The notes under the pieces are model-generated. The model worked only from the letters and a program-made list of their open reading frames with translations, searched no databases and was not told the origin of the DNA. Below, in pieces: positions 1,464 through 26,030 of a stretch of 64,000 nt of DNA. How positions within the stretch are numbered: the stretch's first letter is position 1; every line of letters starts with the position of its first letter. Where the stretch lies: sequence record ON287372.1, one strand, 5' to 3'. The position numbers and the translations under genes were made by a program.

Positions 1464-2816
1464 TTAACCTAACTGGAACCAAATATGGTCAGTGGAGTAA
1501 CCGTTAACCGAACCTGGGCCGTTCCAAGATATGGTACGTTGGGCTTGCATATAACGTTTTACCGAGTATGGAGTAGCGAAGGTGTTACCGCTATTGCCAG
1601 CCAAGTTCTCCGCATCGTTAGCCGCACGCCAGTTAGGTACACTGCCCAAACCAACCTGAGCGGCGGTGACGCCGTGTGGGTTAGAACGGTTACCCGTGTG
1701 AGAGGCAATCGCTGGATCAGGGTTGTTCGAGCTATACAGCCGACCGAGCTGGGTGTTATCCACCTGAGCGATCAAGCCGCCTGTAGACCAACCGATGTAC
1801 ACGTTGTTATTCAGCATGTTGGTACCACCTCCCTGCTGAACCTGCCGCACATTAATGAGATTACCCAGACCTACCTGTGCAGCGGTTACTTCATGAGGAT
1901 TACTCTTATTGGCAATGTGCGTAGTGATCTTCGGATCGATATTCAGCGTATTGAACTTGGTAATCGCCTGCCAAGTACGCAGAGGAGTCATGATGACCTC
2001 ACCAGCAGTACCGGCTTCAGCCTCAGGCTGAGTAGCAGGACGATAGTTCTCAACTGCGCTAAGACCAACCTGGGCTTTGGTTACGGCATGCGGGTTGGTT
2101 TTGTCGGCAATGTGCTTGTTGGTACGATCGGTCAGTTCACCCAGTGCGAGATTAGTCCCGTCCACACGAACGTTAACTGCTTCGATACGTGCAGCCAACT
2201 CGTTGTCCATGTTGTGCAAATCATTGAGGTTGTCATCCAGATGCTTCTTGATGCGCTCAATGTAATCGTACATCACGTCGTGGGAACTCACGTCACCCTG
2301 ATAGATGGCCTGGACGATATCTTCCAGGGACATCACTACGTATTCCAATCCGTAAAGATCGGTTGCAGAGGTCAGGTGCTTAGACGGGTTAAACTCCGTA
2401 GGTTTACCCAGGATATCGTTCCAGCGAACTGGACGGTTATCTTGCTGGATGTCATTCAGGAGTTTACCGATGACGTTAACTGAGGAACTGTACGGACCAC
2501 CAACAACCTGGTAAGTCAGGTAGACGTCGGTGTGTTCCGTATTCATGATCTGTACCATAGTACAAATCGGTTTACCGACACGAAGCTCTGCTTCCTGCTC
2601 AGGGTAGAGCAGTTTATAATCGGTACCCAAGACCAGGGTCTTAGCCGTAACCGCATCTTTAACTACCATGGACTCCGAGAAATACGGACCTGCATACGGA
2701 GCCAGTGCACGGTTATACTCACGACCAACAGTGCGTCGTTCGTTGATGATACGGTTAGTAATCGCATTACCTGTCGGGTCATACGGGTACTTAACTACTT
2801 GAACGTTAGTAGACAT
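1464..2816 (-). CDS. Tail fibre protein
   Basis: Three H-x5-NPH-x-VT-x-AQVGL repeats; N-terminus (YPYDPTGNAITNRI) is paralogous to the next fibre. Confidence 0.75.
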   Translation of the reverse strand: MSTNVQVVKYPYDPTGNAITNRIINERRTVGREYNRALAPYAGPYFSESMVVKDAVTAKTLVLGTDYKLLYPEQEAELRVGKPICTMVQIMNTEHTDVYLTYQVVGGPYSSSVNVIGKLLNDIQQDNRPVRWNDILGKPTEFNPSKHLTSATDLYGLEYVVMSLEDIVQAIYQGDVSSHDVMYDYIERIKKHLDDNLNDLHNMDNELAARIEAVNVRVDGTNLALGELTDRTNKHIADKTNPHAVTKAQVGLSAVENYRPATQPEAEAGTAGEVIMTPLRTWQAITKFNTLNIDPKITTHIANKSNPHEVTAAQVGLGNLINVRQVQQGGGTNMLNNNVYIGWSTGGLIAQVDNTQLGRLYSSNNPDPAIASHTGNRSNPHGVTAAQVGLGSVPNWRAANDAENLAGNSGNTFATPYSVKRYMQAQRTISWNGPGSVNGYSTDHIWFQLG

Positions 2817-8877: not shown

Positions 8878-10026
8878 TTAGTAAGCAGAATCGATATCGT
8901 AACGCAGTACTGCATTCCCGCGCAGGATACGCTGAGAACTCAACTTGAGCCCGACGGTTACAGTCCAACCATGGACAGAACGTTTTTGTTCGATGCTCTG
9001 AACAGTCGAATTAAGGAACGAGTTAACCAGATCGGATTGGTTCTTCTCGCCTCTGAGCTGAGTCCAGTTAGCTTGGATCATGCTAACAATGACATTGACC
9101 AGATTGACGTCAGTGAGCGAGTCGCCTAAACGATAGCCACGGATTGCACGTTGGTAATCCGAGAAGTCCAGAGGATAAGTCGTCGTATAAGCAGACTTCT
9201 GACCTGTACCTGTGCCGCTCGGATAATCCAGACCAGCCAATGCAAAGACATTCAGCTTAGTCAGATCGTAAGCTGGCGGATACTCCAGGCCATCAAGTAC
9301 ATCTTTAGGGAACAGGGAGATATCAGTCATTGCAGGGTATTCCAGACCTTCCAATTCGGTGGTGTGGATAATGATACCCAAGTCGATATCGTTCGGATAT
9401 TCCAAACCTTCCAGCTCAGTAATCGAAATGATCTTATTCATGTCGAATTGATCTGGGTAGTCCAGTCCTTTCAGAGTGCCGTTGGTCAGTTCGTAGAATA
9501 CACCGCTAAGTTTCTCAGCGTGGAATTTATCGAGGTCGCCATTAGGGATCAGTGTATCAAGCGAACTCTTCACGTTACGGAGTTTAAAGGCACAGACACC
9601 TGTCCAGCCCCAACTTGAGTCAACAAACGGCCACTCGATAGTTTGCTCGACATCACCAACTTCGATATTCATGTCCAGTAAGCCAGGAGCAAAGTCGTAA
9701 TCCTCAAAAGGAGGTAACCCGTATGCACGAGAAAGCTCCTTCAGAACCATACGGTTGCTGAGCCCTGAGTCTACTTGGATCTTTACGTCAATCCCTTTGA
9801 AGAGAATACCGTAATCACGTTTAAAGAAGCTAACGTCACGCAGCCCGAAATAACGATTAGAAAGATCTTTAGTCATCATCGTTTGACGACGGTCTAAAGC
9901 ATCGTAGTTGAGCCATGTAACTTCCAGATTGTCTTCTGTAAAGTCTGCCCCGAACTGCGCATTCTTTTTGTTGATTAGATCGATGATCTCGGACTTGATG
10001 GTGTCGTGGCCAAAGATATTACTCAT
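8878..10026 (-). CDS. Virion protein with five tandem L-x-G-L-x-Y-P repeats; paralog of 11751..12590
   Basis: Repeats LKGLDYP, LEGLEYP (twice), LDGLEYP, LAGLDYP lie between N- and C-terminal domains shared with the 287-aa ORF. Confidence 0.6.
   Translation of the reverse strand: MSNIFGHDTIKSEIIDLINKKNAQFGADFTEDNLEVTWLNYDALDRRQTMMTKDLSNRYFGLRDVSFFKRDYGILFKGIDVKIQVDSGLSNRMVLKELSRAYGLPPFEDYDFAPGLLDMNIEVGDVEQTIEWPFVDSSWGWTGVCAFKLRNVKSSLDTLIPNGDLDKFHAEKLSGVFYELTNGTLKGLDYPDQFDMNKIISITELEGLEYPNDIDLGIIIHTTELEGLEYPAMTDISLFPKDVLDGLEYPPAYDLTKLNVFALAGLDYPSGTGTGQKSAYTTTYPLDFSDYQRAIRGYRLGDSLTDVNLVNVIVSMIQANWTQLRGEKNQSDLVNSFLNSTVQSIEQKRSVHGWTVTVGLKLSSQRILRGNAVLRYDIDSAY
9220..9475 (-). repeat. Coding tandem repeat, 19-20 aa period
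   Basis: Five L-x-G-L-[DE]-Y-P units read from the translation; also visible as recurring ggata(t/c)tcca(a/g)-like DNA. Confidence 0.85.
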
Positions 10027-10041
10027 TTACCACCCCTTCAA

Positions 10042-10980
10042 TTAAGTGCGCGGCGAGATGTTCGCAGAGAACATTTGACGTGCGTTCTGAACCGCGTCAC
10101 GACCGGAGCTGGTTTCGATAGAATCAGAAGTCATCATCGGTTCGTTAGCGCCCATTTCCAGGGTGATAACAAAACCACGGTTGTCGAAGGACATCTGGCG
10201 GTAGGTAGACAGGAAGGTCAGAACCTGTGCGCAGATTGCCTCAGTCATTTGAATTGCACCACCGCCAGGACCAGGTGCTTGCACCGCACGTTTGAAAGCA
10301 GATACCAGACCGATCTCGGAAATGATAGCGCGCTTTTCGTTGCCGTACAGAATACGGGATACGTTGTTCAACTCTTTAACGTCGTTGTCATCGAACAATA
10401 CGTCGGTGGTCAACGATACAGTCAACGTGTCTGAGTTGGTAGTGACCGCCTGGTTAGTGGTCAGAGTTTTACGCTCAGGATACAGGTTGGAGTTGTTTGG
10501 CGTATACTCAGTAGTTGTAGCTACGCCGTCTTTCACAGTGGTGCGTTCCAGACGTGGCTTCTTACCGGTCAGGTCGATTGCCTTGGCGTAATACGAGAAG
10601 TAGTTAATCCCGTTACGGTTTTCCGATTTACGCAGGGCATATTTTTTCCGCTCATCTACGGACAAGTCATTAGACTCTTCACGCATGACAAACGGGATCA
10701 TGTTGAATGGAGCGAAATCGCCCGCCGTATGTTCAGCCGGCTCGATGATCACTTCGCCATCGGTAGTCGGTACAACAAAGTGACCCTTGTCGCCAATTAC
10801 CCAATAGTTAAAGGTAGGCATTTCGTTGGAGGCTAACTTAGCGTCCCGGTTAATGCTCAGGCGTTGGTTCAGAGTAGTGAAGTCGAGAACCGTGAGAGGA
10901 ATACCAGCCAACAGGCACGTTTGCAGCATCCCACTAAGAGCGGTGCGCGTAATCAAGTTAGTGTTAGTACTTGCGCTCAT
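10042..10980 (-). CDS. Conserved virion structural protein (possibly baseplate)
   Basis: 312-aa ORF with RBS AAGGA and an upstream TATG; structural-cluster context. Confidence 0.5.
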   Translation of the reverse strand: MSASTNTNLITRTALSGMLQTCLLAGIPLTVLDFTTLNQRLSINRDAKLASNEMPTFNYWVIGDKGHFVVPTTDGEVIIEPAEHTAGDFAPFNMIPFVMREESNDLSVDERKKYALRKSENRNGINYFSYYAKAIDLTGKKPRLERTTVKDGVATTTEYTPNNSNLYPERKTLTTNQAVTTNSDTLTVSLTTDVLFDDNDVKELNNVSRILYGNEKRAIISEIGLVSAFKRAVQAPGPGGGAIQMTEAICAQVLTFLSTYRQMSFDNRGFVITLEMGANEPMMTSDSIETSSGRDAVQNARQMFSANISPRT

Positions 10981-11081: not shown

Positions 11082-11615
11082 TTAAGCTGAAGGTGCGTCA
11101 AAGCCTTCCAACTCTTCGCTGAACGATTGCAGAGACTGATCGCCGGAAGTGATGGTGAAGTCGCCGTTGAAGACTTTGTTATCTGCCTTAACAGAGTAAA
11201 CGAAAGTCTGTACGGTACCTTCTGACTTGTCTTCTTTGAAGACAACATCAGCCGCAACGAATTTATCCCAAACGCCTTTTGCTACAGTCAGAGCGAAGGC
11301 ATCGCGGTTAGATTCGTCCAGGGCGGTATCGGACTTGGTAACGACGTTTTTACGGGTGATTTCAGAAGCGATGCTCAGGCGATCGTAGTAGAAATCGCGA
11401 GCTGCGCCTTTCAGCAGTTTGCTGTTAGCTGCCGGGGTCAGACCAATCACGGTGTTACCCGCTTTAGGGCCGGAGTTTGCGGCAGGTGCAGTGGTGACGG
11501 TATAATCAGTGCCCAGTTTAACGGCCTTCAGTTCTGGGATAGCAGTGCTATTTACCAGAAGACGAGTAAACTCGACGTCGGCTGTATTAGCCGGGTTAAA
11601 CGCGATACGTGACAT
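11082..11615 (-). CDS. Probable high-copy virion fibre/decoration subunit with C-terminal LEGFD motif
   Basis: Monocistronic (own TATG and terminator); codon bias like the MCP; ends SLQSFSEELEGFDAPSA; YYDRL segment resembles the N-domains of its neighbours. Confidence 0.55.
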   Translation of the reverse strand: MSRIAFNPANTADVEFTRLLVNSTAIPELKAVKLGTDYTVTTAPAANSGPKAGNTVIGLTPAANSKLLKGAARDFYYDRLSIASEITRKNVVTKSDTALDESNRDAFALTVAKGVWDKFVAADVVFKEDKSEGTVQTFVYSVKADNKVFNGDFTITSGDQSLQSFSEELEGFDAPSA

Positions 11616-12668: not shown

Positions 12669-15236
12669 TTACCCAAACAGATCGGATAGATCTCTAGGCT
12701 CGAAAGGCGGTGGCTCAACGGCATCGAATCCTTCTAGCTCATCGAAGATATTGAACAGATCGTAATCTGGCTCAATTACCCCAACAAAGGATCCAAGCAT
12801 TTCAGGGAACCCTTCCTCTAACGTCACCGGCTTAAATGGCTCCGGAATATCGAAGCCCTGTAGCCCATCATTAAAGTCTTCCAGAGAATACGGAACAATT
12901 GCTTCAGTCCATAGACCCGGTAATGACTTGGAGTTAACGACGAGTTTCTCAGGTGCCGGAATAACGTTAGTCCATAGGCCATCCAGGTTACGGTTCTTCA
13001 CCTCATTAGGAAGATACTCATCCTCACGGGGAATCCTTACCCATAGCCCAGGTAGACGAGGGTTGGTGATGACTTCATTAATCGGCTTGGCTGTAGCGAG
13101 GTATAACCACAAACCATTGAGGTCATGTTTACTGATCTCGAGTCCGATATCTTTAGCCAGCGACCCTTTGAATCTAACTTCTGCAATTTCGATCTGGTGA
13201 CGTGTAGAGACGTGCGTAGTTGGCAAGAACTCTGCAGAGGAGAACACGCGGTAGAAATGCGGGGAGTGGATATACTTGGAACGAATGTCCATCCCTTCAA
13301 ATACTGGCTCTTTAGGAGACAGTCTACCTTGTTGCCATTGTTGGATAATTTCCACACGTTGATCGATTTTAAACTCAGCAGAGGAGTTAGTCTCAATCCC
13401 ACCGAAACGGATAGCCAGGTTATCGACAATGATATTTGGCGACGCGTTAGTTTTGTGGACGTACTGAACTGAATAACTGGACAGCTGAGTCATGATGCCG
13501 ATCATGGCACTATGTACATCAGAAACCGAGATAGTTGATCTCAGATTAGCCCCGGTGGCAACTTCCATTAACTGTAAGCAGAACTCCGAATACGCAGTAG
13601 GGTCGCTTAACTCAACGTCCCAGTTCTTTGTACGGAACCAATCTTTATAGTTGATTGGCGTAGCGGCCAGCTTACACTTCTTGTTAATGTAGAAACGCCG
13701 AGTCATCACTTCCATCTGGCCACGAGAACGGAAATCCTGTTGACGGGTGTACATCACTCGATGTGAGTTAATGTTACCCTGGATTTGCGCTACCGTATTA
13801 TAGAAGGCTTCGGTAGAGATGATAGTTGATACCGGAGTGTGCTCAGTCAACGCCATCAGTATAGCAGATTCGCTAACGTGCTCAGGCTCACAGATGCCAC
13901 GTAGTTCACTAAAGTCAGGTGGAGAGATCCGCTGTACGAAGAATGCAGTTAAATCAGGAGCTGTTACCAGATCGTATTCGAACTGCTTCATGACGCAATA
14001 AATCCAGAGGATCAAAGCCTCCCTTACCGTCATCGACATCGTTTCTTGATTCACTGGACTAGGGATAGAGATGTTAGCAACGTAACGTCCTTCCGTAGCA
14101 AGGTAAATCCATTCGCCTAACAACGTATCCACGAACTTGTGCGGAACCGAATCAGATCTGTCGATCATGATAGACTCAAGCACTTTGGTCGGAAGCTCAC
14201 CCGTAATGGCGTTACTCACCCTTACCGGGACTTGTGCTTTCTGAGCTGCTAAATACTTGGAGTTATCTTTAGCCGAGTTGACCTCGTTATCTAACGCCTC
14301 TTCAATAGAGATACGTTCGATACCCTGCACCGATTCCGCTAAACTGTTCTTAGGATCCTTAGCCACCTCACCTTCAGGTAACAGCTGATTAGGTACGTCC
14401 TTCGAGTTGTGTCGAAGGAAATAAGCCGTCAGCGGAATGTTACGGGCCGTAAGGATATTCAGGATCAGGTCATCGAAGGTCGTCGTTTTACCGGCGTGGT
14501 TATCGATATAGCGAATATTACGGTACAGCCACAAAGCCTGAGTCGTGTTGACGTAGTCTTTGTAAGCATTGAGTCGACCATGTGAACCCAAGTACGCCCA
14601 GAGGTGGTAACTATGGACATATTGCGTACGGCAATAGTTCTCACGGATGGAAATAATCTCACCAACCAGGTGTTGAAACATATTCCCAAAAAACGTCGCC
14701 GGGTAATACTTTTGTACGGCAGCGGCAAATACTAGATACCAACGTTGGGTATACCGGTAAAGCCACTCTTGTAAATCTTGGATTAAATACGTTTCGTTAG
14801 GATCAACTTCTGACTTATCGTAATAAAGGATAGTGAAGTTTTTGGCATTAATCGCCTCATCTATATCCACTGGCCATAGCACACCACGGATCAGACGTTC
14901 TTGATCTGGGTAACGATTCAGTAGTTCGGTATAGTACCGAGAATCGTAGCTGTACGCAGCTTTTGTGGCTCTGTGGATTAGGAGGTTATCATATGTGAAG
15001 TCAATCTCCTCTAAGGTGTCCAAGGAGGTTACTTTCATCGGCTTATCGGCAGCATGATACTTACCTGCTAAGTTCATGTAGTAACGCCACGTCGATGGAA
15101 CGTAAGGATCAACAGTAAAGCCAATGCCAGTAAGGTAATTGTTGGACGCTTCCGCATCGGCGTTAAACTTGATTGTCATCGTTTGCGCTAATCGCAAAGC
15201 GCTATCGGTATACAATCGTTGCGTGGTATCCGCCAT
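12669..15236 (-). CDS. Large virion (probably baseplate) protein with C-terminal L-x-G-[LF] repeat tail
   Basis: 855 aa; tail carries LNGLW, LPGLW, LDGLW, LPGLW, LQGFD, LGSF, LEGFD; divergent from the portal gene as in phiKZ-like phages. Confidence 0.6.
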   Translation of the reverse strand: MADTTQRLYTDSALRLAQTMTIKFNADAEASNNYLTGIGFTVDPYVPSTWRYYMNLAGKYHAADKPMKVTSLDTLEEIDFTYDNLLIHRATKAAYSYDSRYYTELLNRYPDQERLIRGVLWPVDIDEAINAKNFTILYYDKSEVDPNETYLIQDLQEWLYRYTQRWYLVFAAAVQKYYPATFFGNMFQHLVGEIISIRENYCRTQYVHSYHLWAYLGSHGRLNAYKDYVNTTQALWLYRNIRYIDNHAGKTTTFDDLILNILTARNIPLTAYFLRHNSKDVPNQLLPEGEVAKDPKNSLAESVQGIERISIEEALDNEVNSAKDNSKYLAAQKAQVPVRVSNAITGELPTKVLESIMIDRSDSVPHKFVDTLLGEWIYLATEGRYVANISIPSPVNQETMSMTVREALILWIYCVMKQFEYDLVTAPDLTAFFVQRISPPDFSELRGICEPEHVSESAILMALTEHTPVSTIISTEAFYNTVAQIQGNINSHRVMYTRQQDFRSRGQMEVMTRRFYINKKCKLAATPINYKDWFRTKNWDVELSDPTAYSEFCLQLMEVATGANLRSTISVSDVHSAMIGIMTQLSSYSVQYVHKTNASPNIIVDNLAIRFGGIETNSSAEFKIDQRVEIIQQWQQGRLSPKEPVFEGMDIRSKYIHSPHFYRVFSSAEFLPTTHVSTRHQIEIAEVRFKGSLAKDIGLEISKHDLNGLWLYLATAKPINEVITNPRLPGLWVRIPREDEYLPNEVKNRNLDGLWTNVIPAPEKLVVNSKSLPGLWTEAIVPYSLEDFNDGLQGFDIPEPFKPVTLEEGFPEMLGSFVGVIEPDYDLFNIFDELEGFDAVEPPPFEPRDLSDLFG

Positions 15237-18614: not shown

Positions 18615-20807
18615 TTAGTTGAGTTTGTAAGACAGTACGAACTGACCTTCGGTCATCAGGTCTTTGTTAACTTTAACCCAAGTACCGTCCAGTAGATGCA
18701 GTTCTTTTTCCATATCCGGATGAACCATCGCCATCATGTTCAGAGCAGCGTACAGCTTAGGAGAGCTTTCTTTGGATACGGTAGCGGAAGCTACCTTAAT
18801 ACCAGGACGCTTTCTCATGCCCAGATCAGATTGGCAAATTGGCAGAGTCAACACGCCAGAAGTGACTTTGGTTACGATGCAGGAATCCATACCGATAGCT
18901 TCACCGGTAGTAAAGATTTCGAAGCGACGTACGTTACGGGCCAGAGTCTCAGAGAACTTCTCTGCGAATGCCGGACTTACCATCTTGACCAGATCTTGCT
19001 CGATCGTAGGCAGATCGTCTACAGAATCGATGGTCAGGGAGGTACCCATTTCCAGAGTCAGGATTTCGTTTACGACATTAACGATGTGACGTTTAGCGTA
19101 CACGATAACTTCGGATGGCAGCTGAGCCTGACGGTTCTCCAGACTACGAACCATTTGGCTAACAGTTACACTGCTTACTGGAGAGCTGGTGATTACCAGA
19201 CCACGCAGACCACCGATCAGATCTTGAGCATTGACGATGTCGCCTGCATCATGAATGACTTTGAAGTTTTCTGCACGGATGTCCAGGCCGTTCTCACCGA
19301 TTTCTTTACGGGCTTTGAGGATCTCAACGTTCAGGCCATCATGGCCAACACCACGCAGGATCTTACCGACCTTAACGGTTTCATCGATGTTTGGAGTGAA
19401 GTCCGCTTCAACAAACTCCGGCAGCTCTTGTTGCTCTTCTTCCGGCAGATTTTCATTCTCTGCTTTCAGACGAGTAACTTCATCTTCCCACATCTTACGA
19501 GATTCAGCTTCACGACGCTTAGCCTCTTCCAGATTGAAACGAGTAGTTTTACCCGCAGCCAGAAGGATTTCTTCACGCTGAGGATGAACTTTACCAGGGC
19601 CGTTACGAACGCCCAGGATGTCTGGCATGACATGGATTTCTTTACGCACTTTTTCTTTCTCCTCTTCACTCAATTTACGGAAGGTCAGAATACGGTAACC
19701 ATCCTTGTTAACCCCCCACTGAGGAGCAACTTCATCAGCTTCCCAAGAAGCTGCCGCGCCGTTGACGGTGAAACGTGGGCGCTCAGGAACAGCCTCAACA
19801 ACTTCGCTATCATTGAAGTCGTAGCACTTGTTCATGATTTCATACTGAGTCAGAGGACGCTCAGGAGATGGCAGAATATTCCCCTTAGCACTTACGCCCC
19901 ACTGGCCAATATCGTCTGGGACGAAATCTGCATTGTTGGCGCATGGTCCTTCTGGATCAGCAGACCATTGTGGTTTACTGGTGATGTCAGCTGGCGCTAC
20001 GCGTTCGAAAGTCTGCGTATGGTTACGACGTACGCTATCTACCGGACGACGCTCCTGCACTGGCTCACGCTGAGACTGACGAGTTTGACGAGCTTGCTGC
20101 TTCTCTTGGCGCGCCTCTTCCATCAGGCGGCGTTTCTCGAGATGCAGACGAGCCATTGCTTCAGTACCGCTAATAACACCTGCCGGGCTCTCTGGGACGA
20201 ACTCGTTATTATCTAGAGGAGTGCGACCATTACGGGAATCCTGGCGAGTACGGCGATCTTCCCGACGATGGTCTTCACGATCATCGCGGACATCACGCTG
20301 ACTACGGCCACCGGTAGAATAGTCGGAACGGAAGTTATCACGTCGCCCGCCACCGAAACGATCACGGCTACCCATAGAGCTACGGCTGTCGCGACTGAAG
20401 GAGCTTTCACGACGCCCGCCACCACGGCGATCGTAGTCACGATCACGTGAGTTACTACGATCGTTATAGTCCGCCAGATCTTCACCGATTTCCATCGCCT
20501 CTTTTTCCAGGCCGATGACATCGTCCATTTCGTCCTCGTTCAGTTGACGAGTGAGTGAACGATCTTTAGCGATTTGTGCAGCGCCGAAACGAAGAACCAT
20601 ATCGTAGATGATATCGTCGATACGTTTACGGCTACGGGTCAGTTCCATTTCAGTTGCATCAACTACAAAACGGAATGCTTTTTCTGAGAGGCTACCACGG
20701 TAACCTTCACGTCCCATTTCGCTGTCGAGGAAATCGCAGATGAAATTACGACGGGCTTCATTACGGACAACATCGATGGTGATTTCAATAATTTCGCGCT
20801 GGTTCAT
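18615..20807 (-). CDS. Conserved hypothetical protein with RGG/RS-rich disordered region
   Basis: 730 aa; RBS GGAG; residues about 110-200 are R/D/S/G low complexity; co-transcribed with the RNAP subunit. Confidence 0.65.
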   Translation of the reverse strand: MNQREIIEITIDVVRNEARRNFICDFLDSEMGREGYRGSLSEKAFRFVVDATEMELTRSRKRIDDIIYDMVLRFGAAQIAKDRSLTRQLNEDEMDDVIGLEKEAMEIGEDLADYNDRSNSRDRDYDRRGGGRRESSFSRDSRSSMGSRDRFGGGRRDNFRSDYSTGGRSQRDVRDDREDHRREDRRTRQDSRNGRTPLDNNEFVPESPAGVISGTEAMARLHLEKRRLMEEARQEKQQARQTRQSQREPVQERRPVDSVRRNHTQTFERVAPADITSKPQWSADPEGPCANNADFVPDDIGQWGVSAKGNILPSPERPLTQYEIMNKCYDFNDSEVVEAVPERPRFTVNGAAASWEADEVAPQWGVNKDGYRILTFRKLSEEEKEKVRKEIHVMPDILGVRNGPGKVHPQREEILLAAGKTTRFNLEEAKRREAESRKMWEDEVTRLKAENENLPEEEQQELPEFVEADFTPNIDETVKVGKILRGVGHDGLNVEILKARKEIGENGLDIRAENFKVIHDAGDIVNAQDLIGGLRGLVITSSPVSSVTVSQMVRSLENRQAQLPSEVIVYAKRHIVNVVNEILTLEMGTSLTIDSVDDLPTIEQDLVKMVSPAFAEKFSETLARNVRRFEIFTTGEAIGMDSCIVTKVTSGVLTLPICQSDLGMRKRPGIKVASATVSKESSPKLYAALNMMAMVHPDMEKELHLLDGTWVKVNKDLMTEGQFVLSYKLN

Positions 20808-23595: not shown

Positions 23596-23603
23596 GTAAT
23601 ATA
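23596..23603 (-). promoter_or_regulatory. phiKZ-type early promoter core TATATTAC
   Basis: Exact match to the phiKZ early consensus, in AT-rich intergenic DNA upstream of the nvRNAP operon. Confidence 0.65.
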
Positions 23604-23643
23604 TACATGAATTTAGGTTCATTCAGCAATAGGGCAAAATAGA

Positions 23644-23665
23644 CCGGGGACCCGAAGGTCCCCGG
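23644..23665 (-). terminator. Strong terminator of the MCP transcript
   Basis: CCGGGGACC-TTCG-GGTCCCCGG followed by TCTATTTT on the minus strand. Confidence 0.85.
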
Positions 23666-23681
23666 CTTATTGGCTTGTGGC

Positions 23682-23732
23682 CTAGGCAGGATCGAACCCG
23701 CTTAGAGGGTTCTCAAACGCCTCTTCAAGAGC
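23682..23732 (-). other. In-frame UGA-readthrough extension of the MCP (ALEEAFENPLSGFDPA-TAG)
   Basis: Translated by hand from 23732 downward; carries the L-x-G-F-D motif shared with other virion proteins. Confidence 0.6.
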
Positions 23733-26030
23733 TCAACCGCCAGTAGGAGGAGTAACTTCACCCTTGAACTCCGCGGCGTTGGTGACTTTAACGTCGTTCG
23801 CCTGAGAGGTGCGTTTCGCGATCGCTTCTTCCAGGTTCACCACGCGGATGCTCAGCATGATTGGCAGGAAGTTGAAGTAACGGTAACGCGGGGTCAGACG
23901 GATTTCGTTACCGATGCGTTGGTTACGAATCATCTGGAAGTTAACCAGGTACTCTGGGATCAGACCCAGCACACCGTGTTGCAGTGGGTGCGGTTCATCA
24001 ACGTTCGGCAGCACGAAGGTCATGATGATCTGATCTTTCATGCGCAGGTCGGAGATGCGAGCGATGGTGTAGTCGTAACCAATACCAACGGTACGGTCGT
24101 CGCCAGGAATCTGCAGGTACTGAGGCAGACGCATGTCGGTACCGATAGCTACGTGCGGCTTAGGAGTACGGCCTGGGAAGGCAGCTTCCAGAGCAGCGGT
24201 GTAACCAGTCAGCTGGTCAGCGGTGTAAACCATTTCGTTGATCTTGCTAACCAACAGACCCTGGATGTCAGTCTGCTTAGCAGCTGAGGTCAGGTTGTTC
24301 AGGTCTTTCAGCAGGTCAACTTCGGCTTCCATGTAGTATGGACGCACGTAGTACTGACCGACGCCTTCCAGGCCTTGGTTAGATTCGATCGGGTGCGGTA
24401 CGCCAACGCCCAGGTAGGCTTTCAGAGTATCGCGACGGTTCAGCAGGGTGGTAACTGCGGCGTTACGCATCTGTACACGGTAAGCCGTGGTCAGAGCTTC
24501 GATACGCGGGTACACTTTCTCTTCGTCTTGCAGAGCTGGTTTGATGATAACCAGCGGCGGCAGAGTTGGGATCATGAAGCCGTGTTTCATCACGTCGGAG
24601 TCGATTGCCAGGCCCAGTTCCAGTTGGTTGATGTTGGTCAGACGAGCTTCCAGGCTGTAGCCTGCTGCTTCGAAAGTCAGACCAGCGATCAGTGCTGCGA
24701 TACGAGCGTCAGACAGAGCGATTTCCACGCCGTCTTTGTCGAATGCTTTGCTGATTGCCAGAGGACGGATGGCGGTTTCGCCGGAACCGGTTTCAACGTT
24801 GATTTCGCCGTCAACTTTAACGGACAGTTCCAGGCTATAGCCGGCGTCCAGCAGAGCTTTCAGGTTGGCAGATTCTGCCTGGTCAACGGTTTTGGTTTCT
24901 GCGTTCACTGCCAGAGTGGAGTGGAACTTCAGCTGCATCTGACGGAAGTTGTATTCGCGGGTAGCAGTATACGCTGCGTACTGGTCGCGGTTCACTTCGA
25001 AGTTAACTTGCTCTTTAACGCCGCCTTTAGCAACGGTAACCAGCAGGTCTTTCAGGGCAATACGGCTGTCCAGGGAGTCAGTGAAGGTTGGAGAACCTTT
25101 CTGCAGACGGCTTGGAGTTTGCGCCAGCATTGGCAGGTTGAAGTCAACGCCGAATTTCAGGTAGTTGGTTTCGAACTCTTCGTTCGCCTGAACCACTTTG
25201 CGCGGAGCAACGATAGCTGGATCGATGAACTGGTCATCGTTTTCGCCGGCGTGTACGCATGGGATCAGCTCAGTGGAATTGCTTTCCAGAACGGTGTAGT
25301 CCAGCAGGCCCTGCAGAACGTTGCGTTTCGGGAACTTCACTGCGTCGCCTTTCAGGCCGGAACCCTGGTAGGTTTCCCAAACCATGTTACGGCGGATCGA
25401 CATCACGAAACCAGCTTGGTCCGGAGTGATGATTTGGGTACGGTAGAACAGCTCAGCGAATGGGTGCTGTTTAGCAGCCATCATGTTGATCGCGTAGCTG
25501 TGCTCACGCCATTTTTCAGTTTCTTTCTCATCGAAAGATTCGATAGAAGGACGGCTCGCTTCTGGCAGGGTAACGATAGAACCGTTCGCGCCGGAAGAAA
25601 CCATGTTGTGGATTACTACGCCGCTTTCGAACGAAGGGTTCGAATAACCGTCGCGGTAATACGCGGCTGGGTTTTTGTAGGACATTGCCAGAACGGCCGC
25701 AGCTTCAACAGCAACTTTGTTGCCGTGCTCTTCGATGAACTCACCGCCTTCAACGATTGCGCTGTCAGCAACGCCGCCTTCCAGTTCGCTAACTGCGCCA
25801 GCAGCGTCAGCCTGAACTTCGGTCAGATCTTGGGTCAGGTTTTCCAGGGTGGTTTCAACGTCGGAGGCGTTAACGCCCAGCTCGCTGTAGCTTTCCAGGG
25901 ATACGGACATCACGCCAGCTTGTGCGCCTTCGCCCAGGCCGTTAATGTTGCGCTTTACAACACCGTCAATTTTCTCAACCAGAGTTTTGACGATATTACC
26001 GCGCAGTGCGCTTTTCAGTGGTCTTGCCAT
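23733..26030 (-). CDS. Major capsid protein precursor (phiKZ gp120-like)
   Basis: 765 aa; extreme codon bias; acidic propeptide with VSLE/S, PSFE/S, PSIE/S sites; own TATG promoters and terminator; next to the DnaB gene. Confidence 0.88.
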   Translation of the reverse strand: MARPLKSALRGNIVKTLVEKIDGVVKRNINGLGEGAQAGVMSVSLESYSELGVNASDVETTLENLTQDLTEVQADAAGAVSELEGGVADSAIVEGGEFIEEHGNKVAVEAAAVLAMSYKNPAAYYRDGYSNPSFESGVVIHNMVSSGANGSIVTLPEASRPSIESFDEKETEKWREHSYAINMMAAKQHPFAELFYRTQIITPDQAGFVMSIRRNMVWETYQGSGLKGDAVKFPKRNVLQGLLDYTVLESNSTELIPCVHAGENDDQFIDPAIVAPRKVVQANEEFETNYLKFGVDFNLPMLAQTPSRLQKGSPTFTDSLDSRIALKDLLVTVAKGGVKEQVNFEVNRDQYAAYTATREYNFRQMQLKFHSTLAVNAETKTVDQAESANLKALLDAGYSLELSVKVDGEINVETGSGETAIRPLAISKAFDKDGVEIALSDARIAALIAGLTFEAAGYSLEARLTNINQLELGLAIDSDVMKHGFMIPTLPPLVIIKPALQDEEKVYPRIEALTTAYRVQMRNAAVTTLLNRRDTLKAYLGVGVPHPIESNQGLEGVGQYYVRPYYMEAEVDLLKDLNNLTSAAKQTDIQGLLVSKINEMVYTADQLTGYTAALEAAFPGRTPKPHVAIGTDMRLPQYLQIPGDDRTVGIGYDYTIARISDLRMKDQIIMTFVLPNVDEPHPLQHGVLGLIPEYLVNFQMIRNQRIGNEIRLTPRYRYFNFLPIMLSIRVVNLEEAIAKRTSQANDVKVTNAAEFKGEVTPPTGG

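Follow-up and report, generated by a model that had tools for sequence, protein, structure and literature searches.

A putative leaky-stop tail on the major capsid protein of a Serratia jumbo phage

The major capsid protein (MCP) gene of Serratia phage vB_SmaS-Totoro, a Moabitevirus with a phiKZ-type capsid protein, ends in a UGA stop codon followed by a short in-frame peptide that related phages keep under protein-level selection, and that they would reach by UGA or UAG readthrough or by a -1 frameshift. On this comparative evidence a minority of capsid subunits very probably carry a C-terminal tag resembling the tail of a small virion protein, although that the extension is translated is inferred from sequence alone; we put the probability of this reading at roughly 0.72. 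We found no prior description of it in the searchable literature, and no paper that we found reports the extended protein.

We analysed a 64,000-nucleotide stretch of the phage genome (the window; record ON287372.1), and the features discussed here are collected in the table. The initial annotation had noted that the MCP stop is followed by an in-frame open stretch whose peptide resembles segments of an 855-aa and a 177-aa protein of the same phage, and this observation is confirmed: the MCP ends GEVTPPTGG, the codon context is GGT TGA G, and sixteen further codons and a TAG follow, 15 nt before a strong terminator. Its interpretation, that leaky termination places a motif shared with other virion proteins on some capsomers, is only partly supported, as set out below. 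Two of its supporting arguments are weak. A 16-codon open stretch after a stop is unremarkable, and UGA is not odd on this gene, as had been argued from a prevalence of TAA, because of 280 long ORFs in the genome 184 end in TAA, 64 (about 23%) in TGA and 32 in TAG.

Table 1. Positions of the MCP gene, its putative extension and the related virion protein genes in the window
Coordinates	Strand	Feature	Basis
23736..26030	-	Major capsid protein gene, 765 codons, phiKZ gp120 type	PF25620, E 7e-224 over profile positions 2-634 of 635; phrog_3231; PDB 8bfl (phiKp24 MCP), E 1e-279, aligned to residues 189-752; 8y6v (phiKZ gp120), E 1e-41
23733..23735	-	TGA stop codon, the proposed readthrough site	TGA (16) or TAG (1), never TAA, in the 17 lineages with the in-frame motif
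23685..23732	-	In-frame 16-codon extension ALEEAFENPLSGFDPA, no start codon of its own	Conserved in Moabite and 2050HW groups with many synonymous changes (pS 0.68-0.78 against pN 0.20)
23682..23684	-	TAG stop that ends the extension	Conserved in all eight Moabitevirus genomes read
23643..23666	-	Intrinsic terminator, GC-rich 10-bp hairpin with TTCG loop, followed by a T-tract	Annotated as a terminator at the homologous place in Moabite
11082..11615	-	177-aa virion protein of the gp143/gp127-N family; last 17 residues carry the motif (SLQSFSEELEGFDAPSA at its end)	phrog_1037; C-terminal L..F...L.GFDAP.A positions invariant in 4 homologues
12669..15236	-	855-aa baseplate-wedge protein (phiKZ gp128 homologue); tail (about 12672..13139) with seven motif units spaced 21-22 residues apart, at residues 706, 728, 751, 772, 792, 813 and 834, including SLEDFNDGLQGFD, TLEEGFPEMLGSF and LFNIFDELEGFD	PDB 9xqs_C (PHIKZ128), E 4e-108; role from PMC13250141
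11751..12614	-	287-aa gp127-family protein (DUF7941) with one L-x-G-L-x-Y-P unit	
10042..10980	-	312-aa gp139-family protein (DUF7208), a component of the baseplate outer-periphery band in phiKZ	PMC13250141
8878..10026	-	382-aa protein with a gp127-like N-domain and five L-x-G-L-[DE]-Y-P units	

To ascertain whether the extension is more than a chance open frame, we carried out the comparison of MCP 3' ends in related phages that had been proposed as a check. Scans of viral and metagenome contigs with the MCP protein and its alignment gave few loci, and exact-protein look-ups were therefore used instead. Of 31 MCP gene ends read, 17 lineages carry the motif in frame, following TGA in 16 of them, including PhiEaH1, SPLA10, PCH45, Goslar and ten metagenomic lineages, and TAG in one, here called L045; the MCP of Goslar is only about 29% identical to that of Totoro. 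Three lineages that form one clade (L037, L039 and L043) end in TAA and carry the same motif in the -1 frame. Nine others end in TAA with no motif in any frame, and the remaining two, phiKZ and Psa21, have TGA followed by a different conserved peptide. These lineages are phylogenetically related, meaning that the counts overstate independence; the tree suggests one loss, one switch to frameshifting and one TGA-to-TAG change within the enterobacterial clade. None of 47 called MCP homologues has the tail permanently fused, and tblastn searches with the PCH45 and Goslar extensions found only the MCP-downstream sites, all of them unannotated.

The pattern of substitution indicates purifying selection on the peptide. 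Totoro, the Moabite group and the 2050HW group all keep TGA, the frame, 16 codons and TAG, yet Moabite and 2050HW differ by 7.8 synonymous against 7.2 non-synonymous changes in the extension (pS 0.68, pN 0.20), while the 3' UTR beyond the TAG is nearly identical. In informative pairs dN/dS was 0.11-0.41, and mismatches fell 27/24/49 by codon position, an excess at third positions (p = 0.004). The motif has Leu, Glu, Phe, Leu, Gly and Phe at fixed positions, present in 16, 14, 14, 14, 14 and 17 of the 17 lineages, respectively.

In the clade with the motif in the -1 frame, in-phase X XXY YYZ heptamers, C CCA AAG in L037 and A AAA AAG in L043, lie one and two codons before the stop, and L043 also has a hairpin about 5 nt downstream; the case of L039 is ambiguous. 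Totoro itself has no such site: its sequence is ACT GGC GGT TGA, and the extension is in frame 0. We also looked for a context that would stimulate readthrough. The base after the stop is C or A in most lineages but G in Totoro, which is not the weakest context, and the last sense codon is often, though not always, Pro or Gly. Single-sequence folds were suggestive, but the alignment fold gave only a weak 5-bp hairpin without covariation, and an Rfam search returned only sub-threshold sRNA noise.

We next asked whether the extension resembles other proteins of the same phage. In four lineages, including phiKZ, it resembles the C-terminal tail of a small gp143-family virion protein, and in Totoro and PCH45 it also resembles units in the tail of the gp128-like baseplate-wedge protein. 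The similarity is statistically significant in three of the four: the PCH45 extension against its gp128-like C-end gave a Smith-Waterman score of 41 (reached by 0 of 300 shuffled queries), the PhiEaH1 extension against the C-end of its 200-aa protein 40 (5 of 300), and the phiKZ extension against the gp143 C-end 63 (0 of 300). In Totoro alone the top two hits are the expected tails, but the score of 30 was reached by 181 of 300 shuffles and is not above chance. The mimicry is lineage-specific, and the Phe-to-Leu spacing matches within a lineage and differs between lineages. A motif HMM built from the 17 extensions and searched against all six-frame ORFs of the Totoro genome pieces found only the extension itself significant, the 177-aa C-end being the best real-ORF hit (iE 4), and no second motif copy was found in Goslar. 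The wedge-tail motif persists in Klebsiella phages that lack the MCP extension, such that the motif in the tail proteins and the extension do not strictly co-occur.

The small proteins belong to phrog_2935 and phrog_1037, and the link between phiKZ gp143 and the Totoro 177-aa family rests on these shared PHROG families, as a direct profile comparison gave a probability of only 0.1%. Two other identities were rejected: DUF7941, at first taken for the gp131 fibre N-domain, is the gp127 family, and the 855-aa protein is gp128-like, not gp130-like. AF2 models of the 855-aa and 177-aa proteins (pLDDT 38 and 49) were too poor to use, and the disordered look of the tails counts only as weak support.

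The best account of these observations is that the MCP gene makes two products. In this view most ribosomes terminate at UGA to make the 765-aa shell subunit, while a minority read the UGA as a sense codon, most likely through the host's near-cognate Trp tRNA, and add 17 residues before stopping at TAG. In phiKZ the MCP C-terminal arms form the central bundle of each hexamer, and in pentamers they reach the outer decoration protein gp244 (PMC11297242); the arm also lies at the capsomer centre in phiKp24. Because the Totoro stop is preceded by a Pro/Gly-rich linker, the tag would be displayed at capsomer centres, probably on the outside. Tagged subunits would then probably bind the same partner as the gp143-family and wedge tails, with leaky termination setting how many capsomers are tagged. 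Our analysis establishes the sequence anatomy, conservation, selection pattern, alternative recoding routes and motif mimicry, whereas translation itself, the decoding tRNA, the readthrough rate, incorporation into capsids, outward display and binding to a partner are inferred. Published phiKZ and phiKp24 capsid maps report no extra C-terminal density, although a rare, flexible tag would be averaged out. The initial annotation was supported in proposing recoding, for which the comparative evidence (stop-codon type, frame, selection pattern and replacement of readthrough by a -1 frameshift in one clade) is strong, and in proposing a shared motif, but the partners in the similarity are the gp143-family and gp128-like tails rather than head fibres, and its proposal that tagged capsomers anchor fibres, with the readthrough rate setting fibre density, remains inference.

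Of the alternatives, the one that survives best, although unlikely, is that the extension is translated but is not a structural tag, being instead a by-product that is tolerated, used for regulation or quality control, such as a degron, or kept out of capsids. In Totoro it could be clipped by the prohead protease, a caveat raised in the initial annotation, because A-L-E fits the (S/A/G)-x-E rule for phiKZ-type proteases, for which cleavages after Glu are described (PMC11297242); the lack of extra density in capsid maps is also compatible with this reading. However, A-L-E occurs only in Totoro, the site being absent in Moabite, 2050HW, PCH45, PhiEaH1 and the others, where we found T-L-G-E, T-L-A-E, L-S-E or L-S-Q. 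Selection acts on the whole motif and the motif copies virion protein tails, which points to a binding function, and the Pro/Gly-rich linker fits display.

Less likely still is that the stretch is conserved as RNA, for example as a terminator-proximal or mRNA-stability element, with an incidental open frame. Hairpins that include the stop region fold in several lineages with z-scores from -1.7 to -3.4, and codons 3-9 of the PCH45-type extensions are nearly invariant even at synonymous sites. Against this, the RNAalifold hairpin shows no compensatory changes, the extension in Moabitevirus diverges faster than the flanking UTR and mostly at synonymous sites, the peptide is conserved where the DNA is saturated, the frame relative to the MCP is kept or replaced by a -1 frame with slippery heptamers, and the peptide matches other proteins of the same phage.

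A separate micro-gene translated by reinitiation or from a non-canonical start is very unlikely: CTG or CTA directly follows the stop in 10 lineages, but the 16 Totoro codons contain no in-frame ATG, GTG or TTG, the first codon varies (GCT, ACT, ACG, GAG, CTA, CTG), no Shine-Dalgarno sequence precedes the extension, and in the -1-frame clade the motif would be reached only through in-phase heptamers inside the MCP gene. Efficient decoding of the UGA in all MCP copies, by a suppressor tRNA, selenocysteine insertion or a late-infection code change, is the least likely, although some phages recode stop codons (for example PMC9523058), since the 278-kb Totoro genome has a single tRNA, Ser(GCT), and no suppressor, no SECIS was found, about 23% of its long ORFs end in TGA, one lineage uses TAG and one clade would use frameshifting, and the solved phiKZ capsid models the MCP only to its annotated end, residue 747.

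A broader and more tentative possibility, somewhat less likely than not, is that recoding at the MCP stop is a family-wide, unannotated feature of phiKZ-like nucleus-forming jumbo phages, including phiKZ, PhiPA3, Goslar and PCH45. Readthrough or a -1 frameshift would place on a fixed fraction of capsomers the docking peptide that ends the gp143-family protein, linking the capsid surface to a partner of the tail or baseplate network or to an intracellular docking factor, with the ratio set by termination efficiency. If the extension is made, every annotated capsid gene in this large and heavily studied phage group lacks a second product, and stop-codon readthrough would gain a clear structural example in dsDNA phages. 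The interchange of UGA, UAG and -1 frameshifting for one peptide would be an unusually clean natural demonstration that the ratio of products is what selection preserves. The tag also points to an unplaced virion protein, the gp143 family, and to an unidentified binding partner, which bears on how jumbo-phage heads are decorated or handled during assembly.

Among solved capsids, the closest are those of phiKZ (8y6v) and phiKp24 (8bfl), whose MCPs are homologous to that of Totoro; the phiKp24 clade has TAA and no extension, phiKZ has TGA followed by its own conserved peptide that matches the gp143 tail, and neither structure paper mentions readthrough. The nearest analogy for the mechanism is the Qbeta A1 protein of Leviviricetes, in which a leaky UGA at the end of the major coat gene gives a minority, C-terminally extended coat subunit that is incorporated into the particle. 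Qbeta, however, is an RNA phage with an unrelated coat fold and an extension domain of roughly 200 residues, whereas Totoro is a dsDNA jumbo phage with an HK97-fold MCP and the putative tag is a linear motif of 16-55 residues. In T7 and T3 (gene 10A/10B) and in Listeria phages PSA and A118, a dsDNA phage major capsid gene yields a minor longer form by programmed frameshifting at its 3' end, as the L037/L043 clade would; Totoro and most relatives would use readthrough instead, no sequence relationship was found, and we know of no precedent for interchange of readthrough and frameshifting for the same peptide within one capsid-protein family. Programmed frameshifts that append Ig-like domains to phage structural proteins, and fixed-ratio recoding of the lambda G/GT type, likewise set a fixed ratio of a short and an extended structural protein, but here the added part would be a disordered docking-type motif rather than a folded domain, and would duplicate a motif used by other virion proteins of the same phage.

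The gene for the 765-aa phiKZ-type major capsid protein (MCP; PF25620, E 7e-224) of Serratia phage vB_SmaS-Totoro, a 278.8-kb Moabitevirus to which the window is 100% identical (same orientation), ends ...ACT GGC GGT TGA G; its closest solved relative is the phiKp24 MCP (8bfl, E 1e-279). The same frame runs on for 16 codons (ALEEAFENPLSGFDPA) to a TAG, and a 10-bp terminator hairpin with a T-tract follows 15 nt later. The observation made in the initial annotation, of an in-frame extension behind the MCP stop, is therefore exact. On its own, however, it is weak evidence, since a 16-codon open stretch is ordinary and TGA ends 64 of 280 long ORFs in this genome. Just downstream of the MCP terminator lies a TATATTAC-type motif that is present at the equivalent site in every lineage read, from Totoro to phiKZ, and is probably the conserved phage promoter of the next gene.

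Coordinates of features in the window, in the remainder of the Totoro genome and in loci of related phages
Record	Coordinates	Strand	Feature
ON287372.1	186001-250000		Window
Window	26030..23736	minus	MCP gene
Window	23684..23682	minus	TAG that ends the extension
Window	23666..23643		Terminator hairpin and T-tract
Window	about 23597-23606	minus	TATATTAC-type motif, probable promoter
Window	12672-13139	minus	C-terminal tail of the gp128-like wedge protein
Window	8878-10026	minus	382-aa neighbour with five L-x-G-L-[DE]-Y-P units
ON287372.1 (locus L050)	259158-259234 (L050 9358-9434)		tRNA-Ser(GCT), outside the window
L026 (phiKZ)	2659-2736		Extension after gp120
L056 (phiKZ)	18694-19227		gp143
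L054 (Psa21)	1841-1921		Extension conserved with phiKZ
L039	2902-2971		Extension in the -1 frame

Seven other Moabitevirus genomes keep the TGA, the frame, the 16-codon length and the TAG; the Moabite group reads TLGEAFENPLSGFDPA and the 2050HW group reads TLAEAFEETLPGFDPA. Between these two groups the extension differs at about a third of its nucleotides, mostly synonymously (pS 0.68, pN 0.20, including a two-base Leu change), while the untranslated stretch from the TAG to the terminator is almost unchanged. This is the pattern of a translated sequence, not of a conserved RNA.

To ask how widely the extension occurs, we read 31 MCP gene ends in all. An in-frame peptide with the same motif follows TGA in PhiEaH1, SPLA10, PCH45, Goslar (whose MCP is only about 29% identical to that of Totoro) and ten metagenomic lineages, and follows TAG in one further lineage, L045; the extensions are 16-55 codons long. 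In an alignment of 17 lineages the key columns are Leu in 16, Glu in 14, Phe in 14, Leu in 14, Gly in 14 and Phe in 17. Within subgroups dN/dS is 0.11-0.41 in the informative pairs, with synonymous sites near saturation, and mismatches fall 27/24/49 on codon positions 1/2/3 (p = 0.004). None of these extensions is annotated in GenBank, and no called homologue has the tail fused to the MCP.

Three lineages, L037, L039 and L043, which form one clade in an MCP tree, end in TAA and carry the same motif in the -1 frame, overlapping the stop. L043 has the in-phase heptamer A AAA AAG two codons before the TAA and a hairpin about 5 nt downstream, and L037 has C CCA AAG one codon before the TAA; X XXA AAG heptamers are the efficient -1 slippery sites in enterobacteria. 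L039 is ambiguous, as it lacks a canonical slippery heptamer and has only a G-run at the equivalent place (CGG GGG AAG TAA), which could be a non-canonical slip site, a homopolymer assembly error or decay. The same peptide is thus reached by UGA readthrough, UAG readthrough or -1 frameshifting, which is hard to explain unless the extended protein is made and its low ratio matters. Nine lineages have no motif in any frame, and all nine end in TAA. Five of these, FBKp24 (phiKp24), MJ359, L014, L034 and L035, are a Klebsiella-phage clade sister to Moabitevirus, suggesting a single loss; the other four are Eowyn, Xoo-sp14, SEGD1 and Desertfox.

We next considered how the stop might be decoded. ARAGORN, run on the genome as five separate public pieces, found no tRNA in the window and a single tRNA-Ser(GCT) in the rest of the genome, 77 nt long, which is short for a serine tRNA; a phage suppressor is therefore excluded. 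A search against Rfam found no SECIS element. The base after the stop is C or A in most lineages and G in Totoro, the last sense codon is often, but not always, Pro or Gly, and alignment folding supports only a 5-bp hairpin without covariation. In the alignment of PCH45-type extensions (L013, L018, L021, L022, L038, L040, L041, L044, L045 and L030), synonymous sites in codons 3-9 after the stop are almost invariant whereas neighbouring codons are saturated; this stretch contains an AAGGA element in the loop of a 5-bp hairpin and could be a recoding signal.

The motif copies that the initial annotation had placed in other Totoro proteins are real, but the proteins that carry them needed re-identification. 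The 855-aa protein is the homologue of phiKZ gp128 (9xqs_C, E 4e-108), the baseplate-wedge protein (PMC13250141); its C-terminal tail carries seven L-x-G-[LF]-[WD] units spaced 21-22 residues apart, and is also present in Klebsiella-phage homologues but absent in phiKZ gp128. The 287-aa and 382-aa neighbours belong to the gp127 family (DUF7941), the 312-aa neighbour belongs to the gp139 family (DUF7208), and the 177-aa protein falls weakly in phrog_1037. The repeated units in the wedge-protein tail and in the 382-aa protein may be docking sites for repeated baseplate-periphery subunits.

In Totoro alone the similarity of the extension to these tails is not above chance; across lineages, however, it is specific. 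The PCH45 extension best matches the C-end of PCH45's own gp128-like protein (SW 41, 0 of 300 shuffles), and the 184-aa protein of PCH45 ends in a similar unit. The PhiEaH1 extension matches the C-end of its 200-aa protein (SW 40, 5 of 300). The MCP gene of phiKZ itself ends CCG TGA G and is followed by 26 in-frame codons of quite different sequence with a repeated R-x-L-E-[ND]-G unit; this peptide is conserved in Psa21, is found, unannotated, in 62 Pseudomonas phage records including PhiPA3, and closely matches the last 20 residues of gp143, a 177-aa virion protein (SW 63, 0 of 300; best shuffle 46). These small proteins share phrog_2935 and phrog_1037. The Phe-to-Leu spacing is four residues in both the Moabitevirus extension and tails, and five in both PCH45 sequences. 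The extension therefore co-varies with the tail of a gp143-family protein, which fits a common, as yet hypothetical, binding partner, or repeated copying of one sequence from the other. This functional reading is limited by the persistence of the wedge-tail motif in Klebsiella phages that lack the extension, by the absence of any second motif copy found in Goslar, and by the fact that gp143 is not placed in either phiKZ structure paper.

In phiKZ the MCP C-terminal arms form a six-helix bundle at each hexamer centre, and in pentamers they reach the outer decoration protein gp244. In lineages with an extension, the residues before the stop form a Pro/Gly/Thr-rich linker that tends to be longer than in the clade that lost the extension, making display at capsomer centres plausible. 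The A-L-E site, which the initial annotation had raised as a possible prohead-protease target, exists only in Totoro. The interpretation offered there, of a minority of capsomers tagged by readthrough with a docking motif, is partly supported: the sequence anatomy, its conservation and selection pattern, the alternative recoding routes and the resemblance to virion-protein tails come from the analysis itself, whereas translation of the extension, decoding by a host near-cognate tRNA, display at capsomer centres and binding to a partner are inferred. With 1,620 MCP chains per phiKZ capsid (PMC11297242), a readthrough rate of 1-5% would give tens of tagged subunits per head, a figure that is likewise inferred.

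Full-text searches found no description of readthrough or frameshifting at the MCP gene of these phages, and the phiKZ capsid and whole-virion papers do not mention it. A minor extended coat protein made by recoding is already known as a kind of mechanism, as in Qbeta A1, T7 10B and Listeria phage capsids; this instance, its breadth, the interchange of mechanisms and the motif mimicry appear to be new.
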